A stretch of 64,000 bases of DNA from Oculina patagonica (taxonomy: Eukaryota), in assembly GCF_052425735.1 (NCBI RefSeq), contig NC_135769.1:18538001-18602000 (forward strand), read 5' to 3'. Each line of letters opens with the position of its first letter. Position 1 is the first letter of the stretch. Shown here one piece after another: positions 18,676 through 42,600 of the stretch. The notes beneath the pieces are model-generated. The model saw only the letters and a program-made list of their open reading frames with translations. It made no database searches and was not told the DNA's origin. The position numbers and the translations under genes were made by a program.

Positions 18676-21600
18676 CTGTACAATAGAAATGAACTCATGT
18701 TATTTACAGATTTTCTTGCTGATTTTATCCGATGTTTGCTACTTGTGCATCTTTGATCTATTCCATACTCTTTATACCTTTAATGTTTCTTGCGCCTTTG
18801 TTTACCTTAATAATTAAAGAAATTACGCCACGGACAACACATCTTGAACAAATCCCCGTTATTGTTCGTAATCCGTCTTAATCTTCGTCACAACTATCCT
18901 TGTTTATTTTCGGTTTGGTGCCTTTCTACTTTATAGAACTATTATTTGATATGATATGAAAGGCATTTTGTACAAGCAAACATATCTGTAGACATATTTA
19001 TCAAGACGGAACAGAACTAGAATTCGTTTTTCCATTCATTCGTGAACATATCTCGAAAATGATGGAATCACACGATCTAACAAGTTGTTGCCCTGAACAA
19101 TCGCCAGAATTTCCGGCCGGTTCAATATCGCCGGGTAGCTTAATTTAATTTACTGATCGTTTTTCCACGGCGTTTGGCGAAAAAGTGAGAGAAAAAGAAA
19201 GATGAGATAATAGCATGTATACAGAGAGTAATTTAACAAAGTCGCTAAGATTTTTCTCTCTCGAGTTGCATCCCTGGTCCGCTTCTGTCTTCTCTCCTCG
19301 ATTTTTAACTGAAATATAAACTTATGTTAATTTGCAATAGGGTACAAGCCAATCACTTCCGCTTCAGAGCCAAGATAAGGGAACTTCCAAAAGTGTTGTT
19401 TTCAATAATTTAAATTAGCACTAATAATCACAGATGACTACAACATCCGGTTAGAAACCAGGACGAAACTGAAGAAGAACTCTCTTGACTTCTGACCTTA
19501 TGGCCAGTGAAAATTGTTTTTATCAAAGTATCAAAAATAATTTGGAATAATTCTAAGCCATTAAAAGTGTACTGAAGAAAACATTGTCCATTAATATTCG
19601 AACCAGAAAACTAAAACCGAATGCTGGACATCTACGGCTCAAACTGAGCGGTACGCTCAGTCAGGTGGGCCTTTTATTAAAACCTGTATGCCCATACAAA
19701 AATAACGTGCTCAGATTCAAAGGAAGAGCTTACACGAGATTGTGACAGCGATATGCCACGAAGAGCTGAGACGAAACCTAACCTATTATGGGAATAGACC
19801 CATGTCTGCCTCTCTGTGAATGAATGAAACAGTAAACTGAAATCGCACATCTTGAAAAATGTAGCCTAAATGTTTAAAGATCTTAGACATTCTTATTCCT
19901 TTGGGGTTTATTATCAATTCTTTGGTGTTTTTCGACTTTAGTAAACCATAATTATGAGATTTCCAACTAATTAAAAGGCAAGGTACCGTATTTTCTCGAT
20001 TAAACGCCGGGTCTCAAAGTTGTATTTGAAAATAGACCCCTTAAACAATTATTCAATTTAGAATAAAAATCAGCGAAAATAAATGACGTTTCGATGAATC
20101 GCGGTTCATCATTATCAAATTCTAAAAAAGTCAGATTCTGATGAGTTCAATATATATTAAGAGTGCGTGTTAAAATCTCGTTGCATAAGATTAAAGACTA
20201 TACAATGTGAATTGTATAGAGTGTTAATTACGAACTAAATAGTTTTGCTTTAATGGAGTCAGATTGAGTGTTCAGTTTAGGTTTTAACTCCTGGATAAAG
20301 AGCATTTCGAAGATCAAGCATTCGAATTTCCCGCGACATTTCTTCAAGATTGTAAATTGCTTGTTAAGATCTTTGTTACTCTGGGTGTGGGCGTCACGCA
20401 GGTGGTTTCCAATAGCTGAGTGCTTATGTTCATCAATGCGTTGGAAAAGGTGTCGGCGAGTGTAGCCTACATAATCCGCATCACACGAATCACATTTAAA
20501 TTTGTAAACAACACATTGTTGATTTATAAGCGGCGGTTTGGCCTCTGCTACATTGATGTCGTCGGCAATTTTCTTGCTTGTGAAAACTGGGCGTAGATCG
20601 CTGTTTATTTTCTTGCCAAGATCGGACAGCTGCCTTCGTACAACGTCTGCTGATCTTTGGTCTTTGAATGGCAGAATAATCCGAACGGGTGCATTTGCTT
20701 GAACATCGCGAACTTGCTGTTGACTTCGCGACTCGGTGAATCGAGTTATGGTGGAATTAACGAGCTTCTCTGGGTACTTTAGTTTGAAGAAGATCCCTCT
20801 CAAGGTTTCACATTCTTCAGCAAATAGATCTGGTGAGGACGAGAGACGGTGGGCACGGTTTAACATAGTCCTTAGAAGGGATCGTTTGTAGCGAGCATCA
20901 ACATGACTTTGATAGTGGAGAAGAAGGCCCTTGTTTGTTGCTTTCCTGTAGACACTTGTTTTCAGCTGTTTTCCGATCTTTATGAGCTCCATTCCAATGA
21001 AAGGTAGTTTGTTGTTGTTTGCAACTTCCATCGTGAAGCTGATTGCTGGGTGTGCCTCGTTTAATGTTGACAGGAAAGCTGTGGCAGTTGGAATATCTTT
21101 AACCGCGGCTAAAGTGTCATCCACGTATCTCTTATAAAACGATGGTAACTTATCCTCGCTTTCTAGTTTCTCCTCGATCGCACACATGAATGTGTTCGCC
21201 ATGAGTGGCCCAAGGGGTGACCCCATCGCTACTCCATCAATTTGTTCATAAAGGCTACCGTTAAACTGAAACAGCTGATGTTTTGTAGCCACTCGTAGAA
21301 GCTCGACAAGGTCATCTTGAGTGATGTTGAGGTTATGTGTCTCATTGAACCAATTCCTGGTGAAGGCCTTGTTCGCGAGAATCTGGATTGTTTCTTCCAG
21401 GGGCACATTCGTAAACAACGCTGATACATCATACGATACCAAGATATCGCCCTCGTTGAAATCCAGCTCGCGGATCTCTTCGGCAAACTGGAACACGTCG
21501 GAGATGGTATGCTTGTTGACGGACAGGGGTTTTAGTTTCTCGTCAAGCCATTTAGCAAGAGCGTAGTTATATGTTCCTGAGGCTGACAAAATTGGTCTCA

Positions 21601-24600
21601 TCGCCAGCCGCTCTTTATGCGTCTTGGGTAGACCATATAGGTGTGCTAGTCTGGACCCTTTCTGGCAGACAGTATCAGCAATGTGTTTTGGAAGAATTTT
21701 CCGAACTATAGAATTAAGATGTTTCTCTTGTATAACGAAAGCCTCCGTTATTAAACAATTATTAAAGGTTTAATATGCTTTAAAAATAATATCTAATTAT
21801 AAAGCTTTCAAAAATAATGAATAAAAATCATTTCTTAGAAACATAGGGCCTGAAAAAACTCCTGGAATCAAATAAACGCCGGCCCTATCGGGCCAAGTTT
21901 GAAATAAACGCCGGGGGCGTTTAATCGAGAAAGATATGCTGATGACTGATTACAGTCAACTCTCGCCTTGCGGACACCCCGCTATTGCGGACACTCGCTA
22001 TTACGGACAAAATCTAGCTCCCGGGGGAAGAGGTTTTTTTGGAAATTTTTCCCCTTTTTTTGACCTCCTATAAAAAAACAAAAAACCACCCCCGCGGGTC
22101 CAGGTACTAAGTAACCAGGCCCGAAACAAGCGGAAAATGACCGGGAGAGCTAAACGAGTGGCCCATATTTAGTATCCCCGACCCCTCGCACCTTCGGTCC
22201 GTCGGTTTAAGCACACTTCTCGGTACAGTCAACTCTCTCCTTGCGGACACCCCGCTATTGCGGACACTCGCTATTACGGACAAAATCCACCTCCCCAGCG
22301 AAAGGGTTTTGACTGGAAATTTCCCCCCCTATTACGGCCTCCCCCTATAAAGGAAAAAAAACCCCCCCCCCGGCGGGGCCCCAACAACGGGGGTGGTAAA
22401 TGTCAGATCACTGCATTTTGCCATTTTGGCAAGTATTCAAAATTGTAAAGAAGAACAACAGTAAAGGGAAAAAACATGATCGAAACTGTAGCTTCCGATG
22501 GCTGCTGTCCAATTTAGTAACAAAATTTCACTTTTCTAGCAAAAATGAATTCAAATCAAAATTGTAGGGGGGGGGGGGGGTGGAGTCCCTGTGCACCTCC
22601 CCCTGATACGGGCTTGAGTAACCCGTGGGGAGCTTAAGCTAATCTATTTTCAAAAAATGTGGCAAGCAGCCCTAACATAATATAACATAACATGCTCAGA
22701 TTATATGGAAGCCGAGCTAACACAAGTCCATAACAGTGATATTTCCGGAGAAAAGTTGAAACGATACATATTGGGGGTGCTCAGAGTACAGTAGAATCCC
22801 TAGTGTTCGAATCACCAGGGGAAACGAAATTGCTTCGAGAAATCGGGGGTAAAATTACAGAGTAAAACTATACAAGGGACACGAGAATTGGTTCGAGAAA
22901 TCGGGAGTTTCGAGAAATCGGGATTCTACGGTATAAAGCTGAATGCCTAACAAATACGAAGAGTTTTTTTAACTGGGCACAACTAAATCGAGTGAAAATG
23001 AGTAGTAGTACACTGATAGAGGTGTTTGGTCATATCGTGTTTAGTTTTACACGAGGCGTGACAGAGCACTACAACCCAGAAGAACCTGAATTCACGGCAG
23101 AGTCTTTTGGCTACGATCCTCTACAAAGCACAGGTCGAGAATGGTATTATCATCCTGTTGATGAGCTTATTTATCAAGAATACAGCGACAGAGAAGCCAC
23201 AAGCTTGGACTATCTTGTGTCTAGCCGTCTCGATATAAGGGTTATAGACGCGTGTTCGGCAGAGGAAAATGAAGAAACGCAAGATGATCAACAAGATGAA
23301 GATAGAGCAATGGCTTGGAAGCGAGTCAGACCATCCGCTCTCCGTACAGTTTGTAAATCAATGTACATTGGAGCTTTGATTTCGCTACTCACTGCTACCA
23401 TCATAGGTTCAGTATACATGCTCTTCTCTTATTTGAGTTTTAAAACTATACACAACTGTGAATTTCACCAAAAGAAGTCCATTCCAGTACAAGTACAATG
23501 GATGAGATCAATTTCTGATGTGGTTTCATGTGCTTTTCTTTACATGTGGTACTTTGATTGTATTATATTTCTTTTTCGCCCATATCAATTGATGGGAATA
23601 AGAAGAAAACTTCTTCTAGTTTGCTGCGCAATGTATTGTTTGGATGCAATTTATCGTGTGGCTTTACAAGCTCTAGGAATATCTTACTCGAAGTTTACTC
23701 CTTCACAAAAGATTCCACTCAACGTCTTGTTTGCTACCAGTGTATGTTTCCAAGCCTATCTTTTAACAAATCACTGTCGCCTACCTACTAGAAGACGGCG
23801 GGCGACTTTGTTCTTACAACTGACGGTACCCATCTACGTTGGATTATTTCTTGCCATTCCTTTAGCTTTCTTTATTTATCCAGCGTATAACAAACAAAAC
23901 AAAGAAGGCAAATTGATAATCGCACTCTTCGCTCCTCTCATTGGAGTCGTACTCAAACTGATTTCTCGAATTTGTGTCCAGCGGTTATGGAACATTACTC
24001 ATCCGGGATATTCCTATGTCTTATTAGCGCCGTTGTATTTTGCTTCAGCGGTTATGTTTCGAATTTTACAGGCGGACCTTGGCAGTTTGCAATCCATCGC
24101 TCTTCTTGGAATAATTCACGGCGCCGCAGAAGTCATAGAACGAAGCACCATGGTTGTTATTGATCACATTTGTCATGTCATTTGGAAACGAACATTAGCT
24201 CCTTGGGGAAGTTTTCGTACTCCTCGCCGTGAGAGACTAATGGCTGATATCGCTATCATGAGCATGTTGTCGGAATCAACTGCAATAGTGTCTGTTAACG
24301 GATTTTTGTACTTATATCAATTTATTTATATACAAAACGATTCCTTTTTAAAGTTACTGCAGTCTTTTGCCATTCATACTTCAGTTCAGCTGGTGATTGA
24401 GTGTTTTTTCACCAGCGTGTCTCTAGCGATCGAGACTCGCTATCAAAATATGGCTGTCATGGCTGTTTGGCGAAGAAGATGGAAAAGACAAATCTTGGTA
24501 GCATTGGTTAATGCGGTGCCTTTAGCTCTGTGGACGAGTACTACCCTTATAGAAGTTGTACATGGACGTTTCAATGAGGCTAACCAGCCTTGTAAAATGC

Positions 24601-27600
24601 CTTTTACTTGAGAGTAGCAAAAGTAACTCTGCATGTACTAATAGCATCTTTATTCTCACTTAACAAATACATTGCAGAAATCGCACTAGTCTGAATTACT
24701 GTTGATCGGATTTCAGACAGTAGAACCCCGGTCCAGAACAGAATTTTCCCCTGGTTTTTAAAATATTGCTGGAGAGCTTAATTGAATGATCGCACTTTAT
24801 CACTTTGCGTTTTCTAAAAGTGGTCGAGAAAAGGAGGCAAGATTAGACAGTGTGTGTTTCAACCAAGTCACCAAAAGTGTAGTTTTTTGTGTTTCATCAG
24901 TCATTCCCAGTCGCTTCCGTCTACCCTCGTCGATTCCTAATTGAAAATATTTTATTTAAAACTTGTAATGGTTTACTATAACCTATAGACGGAATGACTT
25001 CCGCTTCGGAAACAAAATAAGGGAAGTTCCAAAAGTATTAAATCCATTAGCACTAATTAAGTTTCTATTTATCAATCTATCTAACTACAGCATCCGATTA
25101 GAAACTAAGTTGAAACAGAAGTACTCTCTTGGCGTTTGACCCAATGGAGAGTGAAAACTATTTTTATCAAACATAGTATCAGGAACAGTTTGGAATAATT
25201 AAAGCCTATTACAAGTATTATACCGAAAACATCGAAGATTAATGATTCAAACAAGGAAACTAAAACCGAATCCTGGACACCTTTATGGTCTTAAAGCAAA
25301 GATGATTTTTGCCTCGACAGTCAGGAATTCATTGAACAAGAGAAAATTTATAAAATTTCCGCAGCTTGTAAGCATTAACTAAACAATTTATTATTTTTTT
25401 ATTTAACCTTGTGTTTAACCAAAACTGATTGTAATCATAATCTATTAGTGAGCTCAACCACAAGCGTTTTAGAGTCGCGGACGGCAAACGGAAGATGAAT
25501 GTTCTTCGTTTTTGGCGCGTATTATCAACTTTTCGTCCAAAACGTAAAGTTGAAAATGCTAAAATGAGAGTTTTCTAACCAATTCGTGGGAGAAGATTTT
25601 CCAAACACGGCACTTGTTATTAGCCTAAAGAAAGATGAACGCGTCTCACAATTCACTCAGATAAAGCAATCTTCAAGGCGTTGAGGAGAAGTTCAGACTG
25701 GAGTACAAAAATCATCTTAACAAATATTGTATAACGGAAAGTTAAATATAAATAAATAAATAAACAAACAAAAAATCCTTAAACATTTCCGCGTTACATG
25801 TTTTATATAAACATATGTTGGCCCTTTTTGGCTAAGACGCTCAGCTTTGCAGGAAGAACTTACTAATGTCTCCAATATTTCCGGGGAAAATGAAACAGAA
25901 ACCGGATCGTTGAAATGCACACCAGTTGATGGCTCACACTGAGCAGCTACACGCTAGCAAACGCATAATGGGGATTTTATTAAAACCTGTACACGCTGCC
26001 AAACAACGTGCCCTCAGATTCATAGGAAGAGCTGTAAACCAGCTCGTGACAGCGACGTTTCTCGAGAAGATGAAATGACACCTGTAGGGAAGCAACCTTA
26101 TCTTTGCGTCTTCAAGGAAGAATAAAACAGTAAACTAAAACCGCACACCTTAAAAAGTTTCGCCTTAGGTTATCAAGTTCTTCGTGCGTTACTCCGTCCC
26201 CATTTTCCTAAATCTTGGCCACTCTTGTTCCTTTGGAGTTTACTGTCTTTACTTTCACTCCTTTGATTCCCCCGCCTACGAAAACCACTATTCTAAGATT
26301 TCGTTCGATTTGAAAGCAGTTTTCTTCATCGAAAAAAAAGGACATCGTGACAAAGCTCTTTTAACACATGATAATGACTAATTACTAAGTAACCCGCGGA
26401 GAGGTTAAGTTGACCTAGAACATCCCTAAACATCCCTAATATAACATGATACCACACTCAGATCCACAGGAAGCCGAGCTAACACAAGCCCGTGTCAGCG
26501 ATATTTCTGGGGAAGAACTGAAACGATACATATTTGGGGGTGCTCAGAGTATAAACATGAACGCCTACAAAAAAGAGAACTAACAGTTTTGGAGCTAAGG
26601 ACTACTTTATCGATTTGAAATGAGTAGCAGTACACTGATTGAGGTGTTTGGTCATATCGTGTTCAGTTTTACACGAGGCGTGACAGAGCACTACAACCCA
26701 GAAGAACCTGAATTCACGGCAGAGTCTTTTGGCTACGATCCTCTACAAAGCACAGGTCGAGAATGGTATTATCATCCTGTTGATGAGCTCATTTATCAAG
26801 AATACAGCGATAGAGAGGCCACAAGCTTGGACTATTTAGCGTCTAGTAGTCTCGATATAAAAGTTATAGACGCATGTTCGCCAGAGGAAAAAGAAGAAAC
26901 ACAGGAAGAGCAACAAAATGAAGATAGAGCAATGGCTTGGAAGCGACTCAGACCATCCGCTCTCCGTACAGTTTGTAAATCAATGTACATTGGAGCTTTG
27001 ATTTCACTACTAACTGCTACCATCATTGGTTCAGTATACATGACGATTACCTATCTCTCTTACAAAACTAAACTCAACTGCCAATTTCAGCCAAAGAAGT
27101 CAATTCCGTTACAAGTGCAGTGGATGAGATCAATTTGTGGTATCATCTCATGTGCATTTATTTACATGTGGTACTTTGCAGGTACACTATTTCTTTTCCG
27201 CCCATATCAGTTAATGGGGTTAAAAAGAAAACTGATTTTGGTTTGCTGCCTTGGTTATTGTCTAGATTCACTTTATCGTGTGCTTCTACAAGTCCTAGGA
27301 ATATCCCATTCCAAGAGTTCCTTGTTTCAAAAGAGTCCACAGAACTTCATATTCTTTATAAGTGTATGCTGGCAAATCTTTCTCTTAAAGAACCACTTCC
27401 GTATGCGACGGACAAAGAGACAGCAACTGACTTTTATGTTACAAATGATTCTCCCTGGCTATTTGTGCTTCCTTCTTGGTATGACGCTGGTCTTTTTTGT
27501 CTATCCGGCGTACAACAAACAACACAAGGAAGGGAAACTGCTAATTGCACTCTTCGCTCCTCTCATTGGAGTTATTGTCAAAGCAATCTCAAGAATTTCC

Positions 27601-30600
27601 GTTCAGCGGCTCTGGAACATTACCCATCCGGGATATTCGTATGCCTTGTTAGTGCCACTGTATTTTGGCACAGCGGTTATGTTTCGAGTTTTACAGGCGG
27701 ATCTCAGCAGTGTGGAATCCATCGCTATTCTTGGAATAATTCACGGCGCTGCAGAAGTCATAGAACGAAGCACTATGGTTGTGATTGATCACATTTGCCA
27801 TGCCATCTGGAAAAGAAAGACAGCTCCTTGGGGAAGTTTTCGTACTCCTCGCCGTGAGAGACTAAGGGCTGATATCGCTATCATGAGCATGTTATCTGAA
27901 TCAACTGCTATAGTGGCCGTAAATGGATTTTTGCACTTTTATCGATTAATTTACTTACAAAACGCTCCCTTTTTAGAATTACTTCAGTCTTTTGCAATTA
28001 GAACGTCTGTTCCGCTGGTGATTGAGTGGTTTTTCATCAGCGTATCTCTTGCGATCGAGACTCGCTATCAGAATATGGCTGTCATGGCTGTTTGGCGAAG
28101 AAGATGGAAAAGACACATCTTAGTAGCATTGCTAAATGCGGTGCCTTTAGCTCTGTGGACCAGTACTAACCTTATAGAAGTTGTACATGGACGTTTCAAT
28201 GAGGCTAACCAACCTTGCAAAATGCCGTTTACTTGAAAGCAGCAACGTAATTAACTTTACATGTACCCAGGGCAGAGAAATTGCAGAAATCGCACTCGTG
28301 TAAAACTCAGCAGACGGCCTGAGTATGTTATTGCGCGGGTCATTTGGTTCTATTTAGGATACAACATACAATGTTTATTTTGTACTTTGTAACTGTAGTC
28401 TTTCACGCAAAAAATCCTGTTCATAGACACACTACAACACTTATGACTTAAGACAAGATTTACAGAATTCCCAAAAAAATAAGCTTGAAACAAATATTTG
28501 GAGCAAAAGATACATGATTGTTTAGGACAACGTTGTCGAAACGATTTTACCCCAGTTCACTGTGATGATAATCGTAAATAACAAAGCAACGAGGGATTAA
28601 TAAGTATAACGTTTCATAGTTCATAATCCCTCAAAACGTTTTATTGATTACTGTTTAAAGAAGCATACAATATATTATATTCCAATAAACTGTGTGAAGA
28701 CATACGATGTCACGATATATTAATTCACAGTGTATTATGTCACGACATACTAGGTCACAGTCACGATATCTTACGTCACTGTAGCCCCTGCATATAACCT
28801 CACGATATATGCTGTCACGATATATCATGTCACGACATATAATGTCACGATATTTTACGGTATGTCACGAACATTATTATTCATTGCGTTATGTCACGAT
28901 TAATTATTGAGTTATGTCACGATATACGCCTAGTCAGTTATTTTGTGATGTCAGTTCATTTTATTTTGTCTAATACCTTTTGTTTGCGTTTACTTTCTGA
29001 GGAAACATTGAATGAGTTTTAATATAAAAGCGAGAAAACCTAAGTTTACTTTCTTTATATACTCTAATACGTCATTTTACAAGTTAGGAAACCACAAAAA
29101 GTGCAAGTCAAGAGGTCAAGTCAGTGATTGTCAATGATGCCTTCCGCTGTTATTTGTTTTTGGCAGAGCAAAAATACAGTTTTAGTCGGTCGGTCGGTCG
29201 GTCGGTCGGTCATAAATTTGCCAAGGTTTCCCATCACGGAAACATTAACTTATTCTCGCATTTAAATATTGTCAGGACCTTTCCCTGACCACTCAAGCAA
29301 GCAGTCATTAAACCTTTTTAGCTTGGTATGTAAACTGCCTATCAAATACAGAGAAATCTCGAATTCTCAAACCTTTGATTTCTCGAACCTCCAACAAACT
29401 TGAACCAAAAGTCGTTTCCTTTGGATTTGCATAAGTTAGTTTCACCCCTTGATTTCACTACTTCCTGATTTCTCGAACCAATTTTCCTTTCCCATAAAGA
29501 TTTAAATCTTCGAAATTCTACTGTTTCCCAAATTGTAAAAAAGAACAACAGAACATAGAACCTGAACATGATCGAAAATGTTGAAATTGCAGCTTCAGTT
29601 AGCTGCTGTCCATTGTTAGTAACAAAAAGGAAACAGTACACAGTACCCTGATAGGGTGTTTGGTGATATCGTGTTCAGTTTTACACGAGGCATCACAGAG
29701 TACAACAACACAAGACGCCTTAATTTGACGTTATTCGCCTTGGCTCAGCGTCCATTTTAACGAGGTCCTACTTTAATAGCTGAAGTCCGACATTAATTTA
29801 AATGATTCTCGCATTTTAATTGTCGGGACGTTTCTCTGACCACGCAAGCAAGCAGTCATTAGACCTTTTTAGCTTCGTAGAATTTTTCCTTTTAATATCT
29901 ATCTGAAAATTATCCATTCATTTCCACGTGATTTTTTTTTTCAATTTGAAAGAAATAATTCTCAAGGGCAACATCACATGGTCTGAAATTCAACAACAAA
30001 CAAACGGAGCTAAAAACGTCTGTTTCCATTTCAGCGTTTCAGGGTAGGAGACGTTTCGTACCCACGGACTATTCGCACGAAATGGAGCACCAGCCCGTCC
30101 CAGACCCCCTAATGTTTTGGTTCCATGCCACATAAGCAAGACTCATTCAAAACAGATAACCTGTTTATAGCTTCTATTTATAGTGGACTTTGCTTAACTG
30201 AAAAACACAAAACTTTACATGAACAACATATGATACTGGTTTGTTTGATACAAAACAACTTGGTAATTAGAGAGATAACGCATGACGTTATACGGCAAAC
30301 GCGAGCTTGCCTTTTCTTTGGCTTACTTTTTATGGAATTCTAAAATTTATCCCTCCGATCGATAAAAATAAGGGAAAAATACCACATTCAAGACAAACAC
30401 AGAACTTCTCATTTCTGCGTACGAACACCAAACGGCAGAAGTTGAATTTTTGCCGTTAGCGGAGAATATAAACGTCATGTTTAATCTCTCTGATAGGATG
30501 GGTACGAAACGTCCAGATTGACTGGGTACGAATCATTCGAGTAGGATACGAATCGTCTGAGTACGAAACCTCATTGGATACGAAACATCTGGTAGGCCTT

Positions 30601-33600
30601 AAAATGTTTATAGTATATTTCATATTAGGTTTTATATTTCAACTACAAAACACGTGAACCTGACGTTATTCGCCTCGGTGTCAGTACTCGTGTGGTTTGA
30701 CTGCCGCAAATACGTTGAAGTCAAACTTTAAAATAAACCATCAATCAATCAATCAATCAATCAACTTTAATCATCGCCCATTAACACTTCGGGACTTTTT
30801 CCTAACCATCCGGGCCAAGCAATTAATTACCCATCCGGGATAGTCGTATGCCTTGTTAGTGCCGCTGTATTTTGGCACAGCGGTGGGATGTCGAGTTCTA
30901 GCAAGCAGCTAATTTCCGTCTCAGCGGAAGGTTTCATTCTTGAAACCATGAATTATAGAAATATTAAATACAAAAGAGTTTTACACTTTCAGTTTTATCG
31001 ACGGATACAAAAAACACTAAACAGAAATCTGTTAACTATCTGTTCTCAGTACAGCGTCAATGCGTTAGGTGCAATTTAATCATTTGCATTCGTTCAAGTT
31101 AGGTGAAAATGAGTAGCAGTACACTAATAGAGGTGTTTGGACATATCGTGTTCAGTTTTACACGAGGCGTGACAGAGCACTACAACCCAGAAGAACCTGA
31201 ATTCACAGCAGAGTCTTTTGGCTACGATCCTCTACAGAGCACAGGTCGAGAATGGTATTATCTTCCTGTTGATGAGCTTATTTATCAAGAATACAGCGAC
31301 AGAGAAGCCACAAGCTTGGACTATCTAGCGTCTAGCAGTCTTGATGTGAGGGTTATAGACGCGTGCTCGCCAGAGGAAAATGAAGAAACACAAGATGATC
31401 AACAAGATGAAGATAGAGCAATGGCTTGGAAGCGACTCAGACCATCCGCTCTCCGTACAGTTTGCAAATCAATGTACATTGGAGCTTTGATATCACTACT
31501 AACTGCTACCATCATAGGTTCAGTTTACATGTTGATTACCTATCTCTCATACAAAACTAATCTTATCTGCCAATTTCAGCCAAAGAAGTCAATACCATTA
31601 CAAGTCCAGTGGATGAAAACAATTTGTGATATCATCTCTGGTGCGTTTACTTACACGTGGTGCTTTGCAATCATGTTGTTTCTGTTTCCGCCCACATCAG
31701 TTAATGGGGGTGAAAATAAAACTGATTCTGGTTTGTTCCCTTGGCTATATTCTAGATACAATTTATCGCGTGGCTCTGCAAGTCTTGGACATATCTCATT
31801 CCAAGACATCTGATTTACAAAAGATTCCACTCAACGTTTCGTATTTTTATCAGTGTATGTTGTCAAGTTTATCTTTATAACGAATCACTTTCGTATGCAA
31901 CGGACACGGAAACAGCAGGTGACTTTTTTCATACAAATGATTCTACCCGGCTGTTCCCCCTTTCCTTGTTTGGTTATCACCGCAGCCTATTTTATTTACC
32001 CAGCCTTTAACAAACAAGACAAGGAAGGAAAATTACTCATCGCAATTTTCTCTCCTCTCATTGGAGTCATTCTCAAAGCAATCTCGAGAATTTCAGTTCA
32101 GCGGTTATGGAACATTACCCATCCGGGATATTCGTATGCCTTGTTGGTGCCGCTGTATTTTGGCACAGCGGTGGGACTTCGAGTTTTACAAGCGGATCTT
32201 GACAGTTTACAATCCATTGCTATTCTTGGAATAATTCATGGCGCTGCAGAAGTCATAGAGCGAAGCACCATGGTTGTTATTGATCACATTTGTCATGTTA
32301 TTAGCAAACGAACATCAGTTCCTTGGGGAAGTTTTCGTACTCCTCGCCGTGAGAGACTAATGGCCGATATCGCTATTATGAGCATGTTATATGAATCAAC
32401 TGCTATTGTGGCCGTTAATGGGTTTTTGCACCTTTATCAATTTATTTTCGTACAAAACGCTTCCTTTTTAGAGTTACTGCAGTCGTTTGCAATTAGAACG
32501 TCAGTTCCGCTGGTGATTGAGTGGTTTTTCGTCAGCGTCTCTTTGGCGATCGAGACTCGCTATCAGAATATGGCTGTCATGGCTGTTTGGCGAAGACGAT
32601 GGAAGAGACACATCTTGGTAGCAATCGTAAATGTGGTACCATTAGCTCTGTGGCAATTGTACTAACCTCATAGAAGTTGTACATGGACGTTTCAATGAGG
32701 CAAACCAGCCTTGCAAAATGCCGTTTACTTGAAAGCAACAATGCAATAAACTACAGATGTGCCCAGAAACAAAGAAATTGCAGAAATCGAACTCGTGTAA
32801 AACTCAGCAGACGGTCTAAGTATGCTATTGTATGCGTCATTTGGTTCTAACAGGATACAAGACACATTGCTTCTTTTTACTTTTTTGTAATTGTAGTTTT
32901 CCGAACAAAAATCCTTGGATTGATCTTCAGAGAGGATCACAGACAAACTTAAACACTTATGCTTCAAGCATAACAGAAGACGCAAAAAATGAGCTTAAAA
33001 CAAATACTTGGAGTAAAAAGTATTGTTTTTTTTTCTTTTCAAATAATGTCATTTTCTAAAATCTATTTTTTCCTTCATTTTCTTCTTCACCTCTCGCCTC
33101 TAATAGCTACGCTAATAAATTGCGGGAGGTGAAAAAAATTGTAAATATTTATGTGTGAATTAAAAGTAATTGTTATTTTTGTTGTCGATTGTTTAGACAA
33201 CGTTGTCGAAACGATTTTACCCCTAGTGCATTGCGATGATAATCGTAAGTTACAAACGAAGCAACGAGGGAATTAATAAGCATAACGTTTGACAGTTCAT
33301 AATCCCTCAAATTGTTTATTGATTCTTGTTCAAAGAAGCATACAATATATTATATTCCGATAAACTGTGTTATTAAAGACAAGCTGTCACGATTTATAAT
33401 ATTACAATATATTATGTCACGATATATAATGACACGACATCTTATGTCATGGCAGTCCCAAAAGAAGTATAGAAACTCACGATATATGCTGTCACGACAT
33501 ATTGTGTCAAGATATATTACGCTATGTCATGACACATTATTATTGATGAGTTACAGCGTTATGTTACGATATATTCGTACGTAGCATTCCATTGCACGTT

Positions 33601-36600
33601 GAAAATTGAAAATGATTTCACCATTTGAATTATCGGGACTATTCCCTGAGCACTCAATCAAGCAGTAAATTCTGTGAACTTAATTTCCCTCTCAGGAGGG
33701 GTTGGTACTCATTCTTTGAACAGTGAATAGAAATGCTAAATAGGAGAGTTTTAATTTTCAGTTTCGACGGCGGATATTCACCAGAATTCCGTAAACTGTC
33801 AGTTCTAAGTACGGCATCAATACGTCAGGTAAAATTTAACCATTCGCATTCGTATTTATACCTAATCGTACCTTTTTGGTACGCTTCGGCGGCATATCAG
33901 GCGAGTTTCGTCGAGCCATGGTGCCGCCGAAGCGTACCATAAAGGTACGATTAGGTATTTACCGTACTCAAGTTCAGAATTTAGCGAAACATTTGGGAAC
34001 TCCGATTCTATTGTTTTAGTCTGAATGTTTCAGTACTTGTCGCCAAACATCGCACAATTGGCGAGCGCGCTCAAGTTTTGTTTTGGCGGGAAAGTTTTTA
34101 CTTCTTTTACGACCTGTAAAAACTAGCTAATCTTAAATTACGAGGTTCTGATTTATTGGTAAAACCTCTTTTCAATTCATCGTACGGTAACAGTACTTTA
34201 CTTGAAAGTGTCCATAATATCGTGGCGTATCAGGTCAGTGACTTGATATCGTAGGATATCAGGACAGAAGATCGTGCTTCTGATTGGCTACTTGCGAATT
34301 TGGGTACGGTAAGAGGTGAATGCGAGTAGCAGTACACTGATAGAGGTGTTTGGTCATATCGTGTTCAGTTTTACACGACCCGTGAGAGGGCACTACAACC
34401 CAGAAGAACCTGAATACACAGCAGAGTCTTTTGAAAATGATAACACGAGGGGTATTCAACCAACAAAGACGGCACTTGTTTGCCCAACCTAAGAACCATC
34501 AACGCGGTTCACAATTTGCTTAAAAGTCCCGCAAGACTGAGCAATCTGTAAGGCAGAGAGAATAAGTCCGGACAGAGGCAACATGAAGAAAAGAACAGAA
34601 CTTTTGAACTTTCCAAAACTTTGAACTTCTATTTTCAAAATAAAATACCTTAAAGAATAAAGCGTTACGTTACATCATACAATGTATAAAACACACGTTA
34701 ACCGGCCTTTTTGTTAAAACGCTCAGCTTCGCAGGAAGAACTTACTTCACATTAGACAGTGTAGGTTTAGTATTTTTAAAGTATTTCTGTTTTATTCGGA
34801 TACAATTATTATTATATCAATTTGAATTATTTTTAATTAGTGTCCCAATATAGGGAAAACTTTGTTTACAATATTTGCCTTCTTTTACAAAGAATGTTTT
34901 CTAAAGTTTTCTTTTACTGGAAGGGAATTTTGTTCATCGAAAAAAAAAAAAACTTTCTTCACATATAACAAGACGTCTAATGTCGTTCCTGTGGGAATAA
35001 ATGTATTGGTCTATACAAGCAGAAGTAGTATTAGAATTGAGAATTATGGAAATTGCAAATATATTTGTCGTGTGATGTATAAAAATAGGTACCGATAGGA
35101 TATATATATAAGGGCTATTGATATGGAAATCTAGGGTTTTATATCTACACTTTGTCTGTGGCTATCGGTAGACTGATTATAATAAGAATGATTCATCCAA
35201 TCTGAAATAAAATTTCGGTGGCCTCTGTCCACCTTCAAAGTAAAATGATGTCCGTCAGATTACTGCATTTGAAGGCTTTAGAAAGCTTGCAATTATAGAG
35301 GTTTAATATCTTTATAATTGCAAGCTTTCTAAGGCCTTCAAATGCAGTAATCTAAACAGAATTTACCCAAATGGACGCGAGCAACGTAACAAAACAGATC
35401 AATACAAAGGAGGTGAAGTTGAGCTCCAAGAACGCAAATCTCAACAATCAAACTAAGGGGAGCTTAAAACAACTGAAAGAAACCCTAGCTCGCATTGCTT
35501 AGAGACTGCAGTAGCCTTGAAAAGACTCGGATCTTAGACCTTCGTAACTGTGATAAAGAAACATTATCCTGCAAGCTAATAGCACGTTAATGATAAACAA
35601 GATCACGGTTAAAGAAATCCACTGATCCGAAACATTTTATAGACTACAACATTCTTTAAGGATCTTGCAACAAATATGAGCCGATAAAAGTAACTAAATA
35701 TGCAAAGAGCTAGCAAACACGACAACATTAAGAATATTAGTGAAACGGCCATGGAGAGCGTGAAATCCTCCGTTAAACATACTGAAGGCTAAAATTCATT
35801 TAGCGACCAGCCGAGCAGGTGTCATGATTGGCATGTCACTGTTTATAGAGCGGTTTTCACTTGAGTGTCGAAAGTTAATTGCGTTTGCTTTGGTTTTGCA
35901 TTGCTACGCTTAGTGATTGGCTTAAAAATCTCGCGCCAATTTCTCAGCTAATCAGAACTAAAACCAAAACCAATCGTGACTCGCTCGCGCACGTTTTCCC
36001 GCGCTTCGTGCCGGCTTCATGTATTTGCTTCGAGTTTTGATTGGTTCACTGGATTGTCTGTGTCCTTTGTGATTGGCCAGAGTAATTACTTTGGTTTTGG
36101 TTGTACGACACTCAATTGAAAACTGCTCTATCGCCACAAATAAAGCGCGCTGAAACGACTAAAACGTCAGCTGAAACGTTCTTCAACAATAGAAGCAACA
36201 CGACATCCCAATGACGTATGTGCAAAGTGATTCGCTTCCATTGGTCAAAGTAATCACAAATCAAAAAGTCGTTAAAAAAATATTGATACAAATTTCAAGC
36301 AATCCTCGCGCTTTGCAATTTGTGCCTACAACTGAAAACAAAATTTGCCAGTTTTTCACTGCGTTCTTCCGCAGATATCATACAGAATAATGATTATTCG
36401 AATTAAACTATTTTTAGTGCATGACAGTATTACACAGAGATCTGTTAGCGAGAGGTGAAAGCCCTTAGGGTTAGGATTCGATACCGAATTTAATAATTGC
36501 CCCAATTGAATTCGAGACTTTCACTTTCAGTTTCATCAATTGATAAATAAATATCCAATGCGTTTGGTGAAATTTGATAATTCTCATTCGTATGAGAAAG

Positions 36601-39600
36601 GTGAAAATGAGTAGCAGTAAACTGATAGAGGTGTTTGGTCATATCGTGTTCAGTTTTACACGAGGCGTGACAGAGCACTACAACCCAGAAGAACCTGAAT
36701 TCACGGCAGAGACTATTGGCTACGAACTTCTACAAAGCACAGGTCGAGAATGGTATTATCTTCCTGTTGATGAGCTCATTTATCAAGAATACAGCGACAG
36801 AGAAGCCACAAGCTTGGACTACCTAGCGTCTAGCAGTCTCGATGTAAGTGTTATAGACGCGTGTTCGCCAGAGGAAAATGAAGAAACACAGGACGATCAA
36901 CAAGATGAAGATAGACCAATGGCTTGGAAGCGACTCAGACCATCCGCTCTCCGTACAATTTGTAAATCAATGTACATTGGAGCTTTGATTTCACTACTAA
37001 CTGCTACCATCATAGGTTCAGTATACATGTTGATTACTTATCTCTCTTACAAAACTAAACTTACCTGCCAATTTCAGCCAGAGAAGTCAATACCATTACA
37101 ACTGCAGTGGTTGAAAACAATTTGTGATATCATCTCATGTGCGTTTATTTACGCGTGGTGCTTTGCAACGATGTTGTTTCTTTTTCGCCCGTATCAGTTA
37201 ATGGGGGTGAAAAGAAAACTGATTCTGGTATCCTGCCTTGGCTACTGTCTAGATACAGTTTATCGTGTGCTTCTACAAGTCCTTGGAATCTCTCATTCCA
37301 AGATTTCTGCGTTACAAAAGATTCCACTCAACGTCATCTTTCTAATCAGTGTGTGTTGTCAAGTCTATTTTATAACTAATCACTTCCGTATGCGACGGAC
37401 AAGAAGACAGCAAGGGACTTTTTTCTTACAAATGATTCTGCCCGGCTGTTGCCATTTCCTTGTTGGTTTCACTGCAGCCTCTTCTATCTACCCAGTGTAT
37501 AACAAACAAGACAAGGAAGGCAAATTGCTAATTGCAATTTTCTCTCCTCTCATTGTAGTCGTTCTCAAAGCAATCTCGAGAATTTCCGTTCAGCGGTTAT
37601 GGAACATTACCCATCCGGGATATTCGTACGCCTTGTTAGTGCCGCTGTATTTTGGCTCAGCGGTTATGTTTCGAGTTTTACAAGCGGATCTTGACACTTT
37701 GCAATCCATCGCTATTCTTGGAATAATTCATGGCGCTGCAGAAGTCATAGAGCGAAGCACCATGGTTGTTATTGATCACATTTGTCATGTTATTTGCAAA
37801 CGAACATCAGCTCCTTGGGGAAGGTTTCGTACTCCTCGCTGTGAAAGACTAATGGCTGATATCGCTATCATGAGCATGTTATATGAATCAACTGCTATAG
37901 TGGCCGTAAATGGATTTTTGCACTTTTACCAGTTAATTTTTGTACAAGACGCTTCCTGCTTAGAGTTACTACAGTCTTTTGCAGTTAAAACGTCAGTTCC
38001 GCTGATTATTGAGTGGTTTTTCACCAGCGTATCTCTAGCGATCGAGACTCGCTATCAGAATATGGCTGTCATGGCTGTTTGGCGAAGAAGATGGAAAAGA
38101 CACATCTTGGTAGCAATCGTAAATGTAGTACCATTAGCTCTGTGGACTTGTACTAACCTCATAGAAGTTGTACATGGACGTTTTAACGAGGCTAACCAGT
38201 CTTGCAAAATGCCGTTTACTTGAAAGCAGCAAGTAATAAATTATAGAAGTACCCAGGACAAAGAAATTGCAGAAATCGCATTCCTGTAAACTGAACTCAG
38301 TAAACGGCCTAAGTATGCTATTGTATGCGTCATTTGGTTTTATTAGGATACAAGAAGCAATGTTTTGTACTTTGTAACTGTAGTTTTCCGAACAAAAAAT
38401 CTCTATTCGATCTTCAGAGAGGATCATAGGGACACTTGAACACTTCTGCTTCAAGATAAGTTTTACCAGCATTCAATAAAGAATTCGCAAAAATTAAGCT
38501 TGAAACAAATATTTGGAGAAAAAGATTGCTTTGGACAACGTTGTCGATACGATTTTACCTCAGTGCATTGCGATAATAATCCTTAATAACGAAACAATGA
38601 GGGAATTAATAAGCATAATCTATAATACCTTCATAATCTATAATACCTTTTATAATCTATAATACCTTTTGTCTGTGTTTAGGGACGGAACATTATTTTT
38701 CTGGAGGGGGAGGGGGTGGTATGAAACTATTTAAAAAAATTGTTGCATGGGCTAAAAAGATAAAACAAATTGCTTGCAAACACGATATGTATAAAAAATA
38801 GTTTGCATCCGCGAAATTTAAAAAAAAAGTTTGCAGAGGAAAATTTTTCATATCCCCGGAAACAGTTACGACTTTTAAAATAAAAGCGAAAAAAACCTAA
38901 GTTTACTGCCTTTTCTCTAATGCTTTATTTTTACATCTCAGGAAACCAAAAAATCGAAGTCAAGACGTGAAGTTCAGGCAATGTTAATGGTGCATTTCAC
39001 TGTTATTTTTGGCACAACAAGAATATAGTTTTATTAGTTTATTACTCAAATACAGTGGAATTTCGAATTCTAGATCCCTCGATTTCTCGAACTTTCCAAT
39101 AACTTGAAGCAAAAGTCGTTTTCTTTGGATTTACATAAATTAGTTTCACTCCCAATTTCACGAATTCTCGAAACAATTTTCGTTTTTTATAGTGATTCGA
39201 AAAATCGGTCCATTTTAACAAAGTGCTACTTTATTAACTGCAGTCCCACATCAATTAAAACGATTCTCGCATTTTAATTGTCGGGACTTTTCCCTGACCA
39301 CTCAAGCAAGCAGTCTAGTCAAAAGACTTTTAGATTCGTATGTAAATTGCCCATTTCAAATCATGTGATGGTTTCTAAAGAACTTTCTTTTATCTTTCTG
39401 AAAGTTATCCATTTATCTACACGTGGATTTTTTTTACATTTGAAAGAAATAATTCTCAAGGGTAACATCACATTGTCTCAAATGGGGCAACAGACAAACA
39501 AAGCTAAAAACGTCTACTCGGTAAACTTTGTTTCCCTTTCAGCGTTTAACGGTAGGAGGTACTCATTCTTAAAATTATGCTTTATACTTGGTATTTGATT

Positions 39601-42600
39601 CAATCTTTAAAACAGGTGAGCCTGACGTTATTTTGACTACTGCAAATACGTTCAAGTCCTACTTCAAAATGGTTTCCGCCGAACATTCGAGCAATACAGG
39701 CAAAAATAAAGTTACCACAAAGTTTTTCATAGCATGGTAACAGTTTGAGTACAGCTGACAAAAACTTACCAAAACTTTAGCTCTCAAGCTACCCCACGAG
39801 AGAAAAATGGATTTGAACTTATCTACATTTCAGTTAAAGAGACGTTTCACGCCAGTTTAAAACAAAATGGCGGGCGTTTTAAACATTTTTACGAGGTTTG
39901 ACTTTAATTTACTCGAGAATGCTTTAGAGTTTAATCACGGGGTCACTTTCAAATAGTATATAAAATTTTACCGTTCTACGAGCAGTTTTTGGTGATTAAT
40001 TTTTGCACTTATTGCTCGAACTTTCAGCGGAATCCGTCTTAAAATAAATGATCACCCATTTACTTTTTAGGGACTTTTCCCTAATCACCCAAGCAAGCAG
40101 TTAATTAACTTTTCAACAGGGGGTAAATATTTTTCCAACAATGAAAAGAAATACTGAATACAAAAGAGTTTCACTTTCAGTTCCATCGACGGATATAAAA
40201 AACACTGAACAGAAATCTGTTAACTATCATTCCAGCGTCAATGTGTTAGGTCGTATGAGATAGGTTAAAATGAGTGGCAGTACACTCATAGAGGTGTTTT
40301 GGCATATCGTGTTAGGTTTTACACGAGGCGTGACAGAGCACTACAACCCAGAAGAACCTGAATTCACAGCAGAGTCTTTTGGCTACGATCCTCTTCAAAG
40401 CACAGGTCGAGAATGGTATTATCATCTTGTCGATGAGCTTATTTATCAAGAATACAGCGACAGAGAAGCCAGAAGCTTGGACTATCTAGCATCTAGCCGT
40501 CTTAATGTGAAGGTTATAAACGCGTGCTCGCCAGAGGAAAACGAAGAAACACATGAAGATCAGCAAGACGAAGACAGAGCATTAGCATGGAAAAGATTTA
40601 GACCATCCGCTCTCCGTACAGTTTGTAAATCAATGTACATTGGAGCTTTGATTTCACTGCTAACTGCTACCATCATAGGTTCAGTATACATGCTTATCTC
40701 GTATCTCTCATACAGAACTATTCTTATCTGCCAATTTACGCCAAAGAAGTCAATACCATTACAAGTGCAGTGGATGAGAACAATTTGTAATATCATCTCA
40801 TGTGCGTTTATTTACGCGTGGTACTTTGCAACGATTTTGGTTCTTTTTCGCCCGTATCAGTTAATGGGGGTGAAAAGAAAACTGATTCTGGTATCCTGCC
40901 TTGGCTACTGTCTAGATACAGTTTATCGTGTGGTTCTGCAAGTCCTGGGAAGGCCTTATTTCAAGACATATGCTTTACAAAAGATTCCACTCAACGTTTT
41001 GTTTTTTATCAGTGTATGCTTTCAAGTTTATTTTATAACGAATCACTTCCGCATGCGACGGACAAGAAAAGAGCAGGTGACTTTTTTCTTACAAATGATT
41101 GTGCCTGGCTGTTCTCATTTATTTTTTGCTTTCACTGCAGCCTATTTTATTTACCCAGCTTTTAACAAACAAGACAAGGAGGGAAAATTGCTAATCGCAA
41201 TTTTTTCTCCCGTGATTGGAGTCGTTCTCAAAGCAATCTCGAGAATTTCCGTTCAGCGGTTATGGAACATTACCCATCCGGGATATTCTTATGCCTTATT
41301 AGTGCCGCTGTATTTCGGCACAGCGGTGGGATATCGAGTTTTACAGGCGGATCTTGACAGTTTGCAGTCCATTGCTATTCTTGGAATAATTCACGGCGCT
41401 GCCGAAGTCATAGAGCGAAGCACTATGGTTGTTATTGATCACATATGCCATGCCATTTGGAAAAGAACATCACCTCCTTGGGGAAGTTTTCGTACTCCTC
41501 GCCGTGAGAGACTAATGGCCGATATCGCTATCATGAGTATGTTATATGAATCAACTGCTATAGTGGCCGTTAACGGGTATTTGCTCTTTTATCAAATTAT
41601 TTTCGTACAAAATGCTTCCCTATTAGAGTTACTACAGTCTTTTGCATTAAGAACTTCAGTTCCGCTGATTATTGAGTGGTTTTTCATCAGCGCGTCTCTT
41701 GCGATCGAGACTCGCTATCAGAATATGGCTGTCATGGCTGTTTGGCGAAGAAGATGGAAAAGACACATCTTGGTAGCAATTATAAATGCTGTGCCTTTGG
41801 CAACGTGGACAAGTACTAACCTCATAGAAGTTGTACATGGAGGCTTTAATGATGCTAAACAGCCTTGCAAAATGCCATTTACTTGAAAGCAGCAAAGAAA
41901 GAAACAAACTCTACATGTACGCAGGGCAAACAAATTGCTAAAGAAAGACTCCTGTAAAACTCAGAAGAAAGCCCGGGGATGCTCTTGCACGCGTCATTTG
42001 GTTCTATTTAGGATACAAGTAGCAATGTTATTATTTATTTTTTTAACAGTAGTTTTCTAAACAAAAAATCCTTCAATTGAGTTAATTGACAGTAAAACAC
42101 TTATGGCTCAGCACAAGAGATAAAAATAAGCTTGAAACAAATAATTGGCGCAAAAGATACGTGATTGGTTTGGGTAACATTGTCGAAACGATGTTATCAC
42201 AGTCAACAGCGATGATAATCGTAAATAACGAAGCAATAAGGGAATCAATATAATGGACGTAACGTTTCACAGTTCCTAATCCCTACAAAATTGTAAAGAC
42301 GTCACGATATATTTAATCACTGTATATTACGGCACGATATATTTAGTCACGTTATAAAATGTCACAATATCTTATGTCACTATAGTCGCATTGTGTAACG
42401 TCACGATATATGTTGTCACGGCATATTATGTGACGACATTATATTTCGACATGTCACGACACATTATTATTGATTGAGATGTGTGGCGATATATTTGTAA
42501 TAAGTATTTGTGATGTATAAACTTGTATATAATTATATGCAAAAGCACTTTCAACATATGGAAGCAATGATAGGTCCGATTTTTAAGGTAGACAAAAAAC

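Follow-up and report, generated by a model that had tools for sequence, protein, structure and literature searches.

The window analysed here is a 64,000-nucleotide (nt) stretch of the genome of the coral Oculina patagonica (C12:18538001-18602000, contig NC_135769.1), which is free of any N and in which a tandem array of genes for a family of membrane proteins lies within an intron of a kinesin gene. The members of the array are autonomous single-exon protein-coding genes on the plus strand, and the host gene, which codes for a KIF19-like kinesin, is located on the minus strand. A preliminary description based on the nucleotide sequence had listed five full-length paralogues (A, B, C, E, and F) and three fragments in this antisense arrangement, and all of them were recovered in an open reading frame (ORF) listing and in tblastn and blastn searches (Table 1), copy F serving as query in all searches and as the sequence of the first structure model. 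Copies A, B, E, and F are intact from their own ATG, consist of a single exon and code for 537-538 amino acids (aa), as had been described. Such genes are not confined to this intron, the array being a small piece of a cluster of about 2 Mb. Copy C is interrupted by a TGA codon at 31811 (codon 235) and by a frameshift near 32655. Nucleotide identity of the copies to F amounts to 82-89%, which argues against a duplication introduced by assembly. An assembly artefact, considered from the outset as a possible source of the copies, was ruled out by their divergence of 11-18%, by synteny in a second assembly, and by an even DNA depth in the spacer (about 98 across unique spacer in run X15, which behaves as DNA).

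Host gene, promoters, and transcription

Pfam Kinesin matches are located on the minus strand at 43423-43545, 46291-46434, 46767-46910, and 47590-47688. In a comparison of the exon segment 43414-43533 with solved protein chains, KIF19 was nearest (5gsz, E value 4e-14), followed by other kinesin-8 proteins. The exon 43414-43535 was found in RNA contigs of four runs, where it is joined to 44103, and in run X3 a contig ending at 43414 proceeds, with one mismatch, into the reverse complement of 18675 and below. As this contig joins 43414 to 18675, the intervening segment 18676-43413 is spliced out in RNA. The adjoining intron (43536-44102) comprises 567 nt, so that the 24.7-kb intron is exceptionally long. 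The initial assignment of 18676-43413 to a KIF19 intron far longer than any other of the gene agrees with the splice signals, the X3 contig, and the size of the next intron. The neck-exon block 18577-18675 is conserved in the assembly of another coral.

Table 1 Features of the array, of its putative control regions, and of the flanking kinesin exons (positions in the window)
Feature	Position	Strand	Properties
Start of kinesin neck exon, downstream of the intron	18577..18675 (lower end provisional)	-	Open frame after acceptor; RNA loose end
Host-gene intron, 24.7 kb, holds the whole array	18676..43413	-	GTGAGT donor, TACAG acceptor; frame continues across
Copy A	22998..24611	+	Intact ORF, 537 aa; tblastn span 22998-24608, 77% aa identity to F
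Copy B	26620..28236	+	Intact ORF, 538 aa; tblastn span 26620-28233, 81% aa identity to F
Fragment, 5' coding end	29641..29712	+	blastn versus F 40278-40350, 82% identity
Fragment, residues 334-361	30826..30909	+	tblastn with F, 82% identity
Copy C, pseudogene	31109..32732	+	tblastn span 31109-32729 in two frames, 79% aa identity
Fragment, residues 2-40	34324..34441	+	tblastn and blastn
GAAA-repeat (ISRE/IRF-like) motif upstream of E	36519..36534	+	Two overlapping TTTCNNTTTC matches, -88 and -82 from ATG
Copy E	36607..38223	+	Intact ORF, 538 aa; tblastn span 36607-38220, 84% aa identity to F
Candidate proximal promoter of F	40169..40199	+	TTTCACTTTC at 40169-40178, TATAAA at 40194-40199
Copy F	40270..41886	+	Intact ORF, 538 aa; tblastn span 40270-41883
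Conserved 3' flank of duplication unit, candidate 3' untranslated region	41887..42490	+	Similar to flanks of B, C, E
Last kinesin motor-domain exon, upstream of the intron	43414..43535	-	Pfam Kinesin positions 287-327

The sequence TATAAA is present 66-76 nt 5' of the ATG in copies A (22932-22937), B (26550-26555), and F (40194-40199). Copies C, E, and F share with the distant copies L023 and L024 a block in which a GAAA-repeat is located about 20 nt 5' of a TATA-like element. Of 25 copies, 11 carry the motif TTTCNNTTTC or its complement in the 200 nt preceding the ATG, and shuffled sequences gave 0.37 on average and never more than 3; since the copies are related by descent, the carriers do not represent 11 independent events and the count is inflated by shared ancestry. 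The distance of the GAAA-repeat to the ATG is 82-137 nt, and the carriers include L023, L024, L025, L027, L029, and L041. We take the motif to resemble the binding sites of interferon regulatory factors (IRF) or interferon-stimulated response elements (ISRE) and regard this as a lead only; a literature search on coral IRF elements gave nothing useful.

In three of the four runs guessed to be RNA, contigs specific for F (at least 97% identity, low depth) were confined to the ORF and its 3' flank, and the depth in unique intron sequence was zero. These contigs have lengths of 57-381 nt over 40600-41987 and run on to about 42664. For copy B, short contigs alone were obtained, which fall mostly in conserved parts and possibly originate from paralogues. 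Evidence for expression of the array genes is weak and unstranded.

Two further kinds of sequence were observed in this region. An ORF of 457 aa on the minus strand (20228-21601), situated upstream of copy A within the intron that holds the array, matches RVT_1 (E value 1.9e-8) and a GIY-YIG endonuclease (E value 8.9e-6), a predicted domain pairing typical of Penelope-like retroelements. The segments 38697-38893, 39682-40075, 42637-43030, and 44213-44400 show a very high k-mer depth in the guessed-RNA runs (150-790 versus 0-60 nearby) and presumably represent repeat fragments, either expressed or present in many copies, that lie in the spacers and the kinesin intron.

Family size, duplication, and selection

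Searches of the O. patagonica genome, with F at the DNA level and with a profile of the aligned family, detected at least 220 candidate loci. This number denotes first-look candidates, 81 of which were scored for internal stops, and in most of the scored loci such stops were absent. The main concentration is found on C12 between 17.10 and 19.05 Mb, with copies on both strands, and smaller clusters are located on C8 (7.25-7.30 Mb), C4 (49.26-49.29 Mb), C5 (16.01 Mb), and elsewhere; all 20 further copies sampled on C12 were intact. Since the array comprises only a few members of a very large family, its nesting in the kinesin intron appears to be incidental. More than 1191 sequence homologues, in 599 clusters at 50% identity, were among the matches listed, with source names including Oculina, Desmophyllum, Montipora, and Hydractinia plus one EukProt transcript, and searches started from the distant members P0245 and P0317 reached only cnidarian-named proteins and one EukProt transcript. 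Since homologues occur in both Anthozoa and Hydrozoa, the family must be at least as old as the split of these groups; members occur widely among cnidarians, and in stony corals their number has increased enormously. No description of this membrane-protein family was found in a literature search. In corals, tandem duplication of transmembrane receptor-like families has been reported to be pervasive, and conserved dark families whose proteins have transmembrane domains have been described as well (PMC10236652, PMC13044578). The present family agrees with this picture; no passage on it in particular was found in the text of the two papers.

The similarity between the units of the array reaches about 180 nt 5' and about 600 nt 3' of the ORF and includes parts of the spacers. 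This extension into flanks and spacers, together with the tandem arrangement, argues for tandem duplication at the DNA level and against retroposition of the local copies, in which case the similarity would end at the transcript boundaries and the copies would be dispersed; this argument concerns the local copies and not an ancient founder. With the family present in both Anthozoa and Hydrozoa, the retroposed or horizontally acquired founder proposed earlier would have to be ancient, and either origin is conjectural. At a locus of another coral (L021 in ENA assembly ERZ25878340) the kinesin exons are syntenic, and the intron of about 11.6 kb contains two intact copies. Copy number in the syntenic intron therefore differs between coral species (two versus five in O. 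patagonica). A tree built from nucleotide sequences unites B, C, E, and F in one clade, with the two L021 copies as its sister group, and places A with a copy at 17.3 Mb of C12. According to this topology, a single ancestral intronic copy was either duplicated independently in each lineage or homogenised within each, and A arrived separately from B-F.

Pairwise ratios of nonsynonymous to synonymous divergence (dN/dS) among A, B, E, and F are 0.25-0.33 at a synonymous divergence (dS) of 0.28-0.50, and the median among 24 copies (the coding regions of these four and of L001-L020) is 0.29; ORFs were intact in 24 of 25 sampled copies at a dS of about 0.5. The purifying selection deduced earlier from the intact ORFs is thereby corroborated, the ratios lying well under the value near 1 that would have spoken against it. 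Selection and divergence are unevenly distributed along the protein. In an entropy analysis of 111 close homologues, outer loop 1, helix 2, outer loop 2, and helices 4-5 (residues 151-300) were variable, and the N-terminal tail, helix 1, and helices 6-10 were conserved. The median dN/dS is 0.34 in the variable module, with no pair above 1, versus 0.21 in the conserved parts, and the dS differs about twofold (0.86 versus 0.41). At codons for the same residue, the synonymous difference is 0.33 within residues 151-300 versus 0.17-0.21 elsewhere, and 270 of 276 pairs have the greater value in the variable module. Along the coding sequence, residues 136-310 and those after residue 496 show roughly double the synonymous divergence of residues 1-120 and 346-480. 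The pair L004/L010 is an evident mosaic, with nearly identical 3' two thirds and a diverged N-terminal tail. These patterns suggest that segmental gene conversion homogenises the conserved parts, the alternative being a constraint at the nucleotide level. The family evolves by birth and death, with local duplication at the DNA level, pseudogenisation, and signs of exchange between paralogues; this mode, suspected in the preliminary description, is reflected in pseudogene C, in the fragments, and in the different copy numbers in the same intron of two corals.

Protein architecture and structural relatives

About 11 transmembrane helices, the number first estimated from the sequence, were predicted consistently by hydropathy analysis and by AlphaFold models of copy F (mean predicted local distance difference test score, pLDDT, 77; predicted template modelling score, pTM, 0.80) and of the Hydractinia homologue P0312 (pLDDT 85, pTM 0.86). 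In both models, 11 long helices follow an N-terminal tail of low confidence, and in the model of F the loops on the outer side are very small (2-13 residues). The distribution of positive charges places the N-terminus inside and the C-terminus outside, and with this topology C154, which is nearly invariant, and the likewise conserved C533 both come to lie on the outer side. The N-terminal tail of about 105 residues is acidic, cytosolic by inference and predicted to be disordered (pLDDT 30-60), yet few other parts of the protein are as well conserved. Within residues 1-105 (40270-40584 in F) an acidic-aromatic motif D-x-I-Y/F-x-E-F/Y with the invariant E61 is recognisable, and this motif as well as W107 and R111 are kept from corals to Hydractinia; the tail may serve as a docking or sorting motif. 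Residues that are invariant at 20-37% identity are F193, Y219, R325, H336, P337, R356, Q359, D390, P410, R411, R414, D418, E427, N485, and W492. Many conserved charged residues are situated within the helices, and the conserved polar residues cluster in helices 6-10.

The family was not recognised in the preliminary description, and searches for sequence relatives lead to the same result: hmmscan against Pfam-A with the four window copies (E values up to 1) and 31 family members (E values up to 0.1) returned sub-threshold noise only (DUF389, MFS_1, and others), and searches of PDB sequences with copy F and the family profile gave no match at E values up to 10. Structural comparison is more informative. 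When AlphaFold DB clusters were searched with Foldseek, the first matches were uncharacterised homologues at 40-70% identity, and the next were uncharacterised UniProt proteins that share 11-15% identity and align over the whole membrane domain (TM score 0.4-0.66, by query 0.41-0.60, E values down to 1.6e-7). From their accession series we presume these proteins to be of algal, chromerid, oomycete, dinoflagellate, and early-diverging fungal origin. The top structural match in Swiss-Prot was SPCC553.12c of Schizosaccharomyces pombe (O74949; probability 1.0, E value 2.4e-3, TM score 0.44-0.45, residues 24-522), and the corresponding Pfam family PF28488 (Pfam 38.1, 'SPCC553_12c') is assigned to 13-14% of the members of two neighbouring cnidarian ESM Atlas clusters. 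A search of the ESM Atlas by shape gave TM scores below 0.3 only for model 1 and the own cnidarian cluster only for model 2, and a search by features yielded no usable match apart from the PF28488 clusters. The likeness to uncharacterised protist families suggested in the preliminary description thus finds some structural support in the matches to UniProt proteins, listed without organism names, and to SPCC553.12c. In the literature searched, no characterisation of SPCC553.12c was found.

In an exhaustive search of solved structures, membrane-protein matches over the full domain came solely from the TMEM16/OSCA/TMC superfamily, and after re-alignment TMEM16, OSCA, and TMC ranked above the transporter matches, whereas G-protein-coupled receptors (GPCRs) aligned just partially. 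The fold indicated by Foldseek and by the re-alignment is not that of a GPCR, in line with the lack of a GPCR signature reported at first. Some coral homologues (A0A3M6V0C4, A0A3M6UMW2, and A0A2B4RPR5) carry automatic UniProt names, namely 'G-protein coupled receptors family 1 profile domain-containing protein', which appears on A0A3M6V0C4 and A0A3M6UMW2, and 'Transmembrane protein 145'. Both labels lack support from the fold and Pfam results, and names of this kind could inflate GPCR counts in surveys of coral gene families.

Functional interpretation and comparison with known systems

On balance, and by a judgement only slightly above even, we favour the view that the array belongs to a lineage-expanded birth-and-death family of 11-helix proteins that would function as channel-, scramblase-, or transporter-like conduits and are nested incidentally in the kinesin intron. 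According to the structure models, the family would group with SPCC553.12c and the uncharacterised proteins like it, and it may share the architecture of TMEM16/OSCA/TMC. Its membrane domain would adopt the same fold as SPCC553.12c (PF28488) and the uncharacterised UniProt proteins, and because the architecture probably resembles that of TMEM16/OSCA/TMC, a role as channel, lipid scramblase, or similar conduit would be expected. The polar residues R325, H336-P337, R356, Q359, D390, R411, R414, D418, E427, and N485 in helices 6-10 would then form the conserved working core, and the hypervariable helices 2-5 and outer loops could confer specificity for a ligand, lipid, or partner on each paralogue. 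A true architectural relationship to TMEM16/OSCA/TMC, judged from the models, has about an even chance. Several observations weigh against this view. The structural signal is coherent and reproducible, yet it lies within the noise range that the tool states for helical proteins, and Foldseek searches of the PDB gave nothing significant, with best E values of 0.035 and 0.23 for the two models; the fold, described as unknown in the preliminary description, therefore still has no significant solved match, a statement qualified by the weak but reproducible likeness to TMEM16/OSCA/TMC. Anoctamin (PF04547), RSN1_7TM (PF02714), and TMC (PF07810) were not matched by hmmscan in the sets of four copies and 31 members. 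The predicted topology also differs, the coral protein having 11 helices and an outside C-terminus, TMEM16 and TMC 10 helices with both ends inside, and OSCA an outside N-terminus. A structure prediction with two copies (residues 106-538) neither supported nor opposed pairing, the sole entry for SPCC553.12c, from a screen in fission yeast, reads 'transmembrane transporter (predicted)', and the RNA nature of the sequencing runs is a guess, their contigs being short and unstranded.

A sensory or immune role of the family is plausible by analogy. Chemosensory or microbe-sensing receptors would bind external cues via the variable helices 2-5 and the outer loops and signal through the conserved half, either as ligand-gated channels or via the N-terminal tail, so that this explanation overlaps with the conduit reading and differs from it mainly in gating; we give it a modest chance. 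Hundreds of single-exon tandem paralogues evolving by birth and death, variability concentrated in one module that includes outer loops, moderate purifying selection (dN/dS of about 0.3), and copy number that varies between species at the same locus agree with it, and such a genomic pattern is typical of animal chemoreceptor families. The proteins, however, do not resemble any known receptor family, no pair exceeds a dN/dS of 1 even in the variable module, where the median is 0.34, and with outer loops of 2-13 residues very little surface is exposed on the extracellular side. Distinctly less probable is the more specific combination in which the family represents a fourth branch of TMEM16/OSCA/TMC, shared with fungi and protists, that was expanded to sensory or innate-immune receptor-channels with specificity residing in helices 2-5 and with IRF-type GAAA-repeat promoters. 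A similarly low probability is assigned to secondary transporters of small solutes, which might have been expanded for the exchange of nutrients or metabolites, for example with symbionts. The PomBase listing of SPCC553.12c as 'transmembrane transporter (predicted)', the many conserved charged residues in helices, and the weak solved Foldseek matches, which are mostly transporters, point in this direction, but these matches have TM scores of 0.1-0.25 and E values above 0.03, and transporters rank under TMEM16, OSCA, and TMC on re-alignment. Moreover, hundreds of paralogues with one hypervariable module are unusual for solute carriers.

That the ORF is the cargo or a part of a mobile element, spreading selfishly and without host function, is very improbable and disfavoured here. 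High copy number on both strands of several contigs, the Penelope-like reverse transcriptase/GIY-YIG ORF in the same intron (20228-21601), and the high-depth repeat fragments between the copies could be explained in this way, but the repeated unit contains neither a transposase nor a reverse transcriptase and has irregular boundaries, the locus is syntenic in another coral, dN/dS is about 0.3 with 24 of 25 sampled ORFs intact at a dS of about 0.5, and corals and Hydractinia have the protein in common at 24-37% identity, with invariant residues retained. Even more remote is an identity as rhodopsin-like GPCRs, which we reject. It is suggested by the automatic names of A0A3M6V0C4 and A0A3M6UMW2 and by the reported richness of coral-amplified families in GPCR-like annotations (PMC10236652), but a 7tm_1 match was found neither in the four copies nor in the 31 members, the models show 11 helices instead of seven, and DRY and NPxxY motifs were not found in the first inspection of the sequence.

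Candidates for sensory or immune receptors of cnidarians are poorly characterised, and coral genomes hold many tandemly amplified families of unknown role. With at least 220 loci, most of them intact, with structure models of good confidence, and with no annotated function, the family is among the larger unexplained membrane-protein repertoires of O. patagonica. If the likeness to TMEM16/OSCA/TMC is true, the channel-scramblase architecture would be extended to a new, widely distributed eukaryotic family, and a testable hypothesis for SPCC553.12c of S. pombe would be available. Hypervariable and homogenised modules within one protein, together with the change of copy number at a syntenic intron, make the family a tractable case of birth-and-death evolution in corals.

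Among named proteins, SPCC553.12c (521 aa) is similar in size to the coral copies and likewise a multi-pass protein, and PF28488 is the sole Pfam family tied to the neighbouring cnidarian ESM Atlas clusters; in contrast, sequence identity is about 12%, and a single reviewed yeast entry in the record is opposed to at least 220 loci in O. patagonica. With TMEM16/OSCA/TMC, the coral protein as modelled has in common 10-11 long tilted helices and, in the case of TMEM16 and TMC, a helix 1 that is entered from the cytosol. It differs from this superfamily by the lack of sequence or profile similarity, by the lack of a folded cytosolic N-terminal domain, and by an extra C-terminal helix, which places the C-terminus outside. 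In genome behaviour alone, the closest parallel is provided by the single-exon chemoreceptor families of animals, which likewise comprise hundreds of intronless tandem paralogues accompanied by pseudogenes and fragments, show species-specific copy number at a syntenic locus, and combine a variable with a conserved module; the coral fold with its 11 helices is unrelated to theirs, and a sensory role would be transferred from them by analogy.

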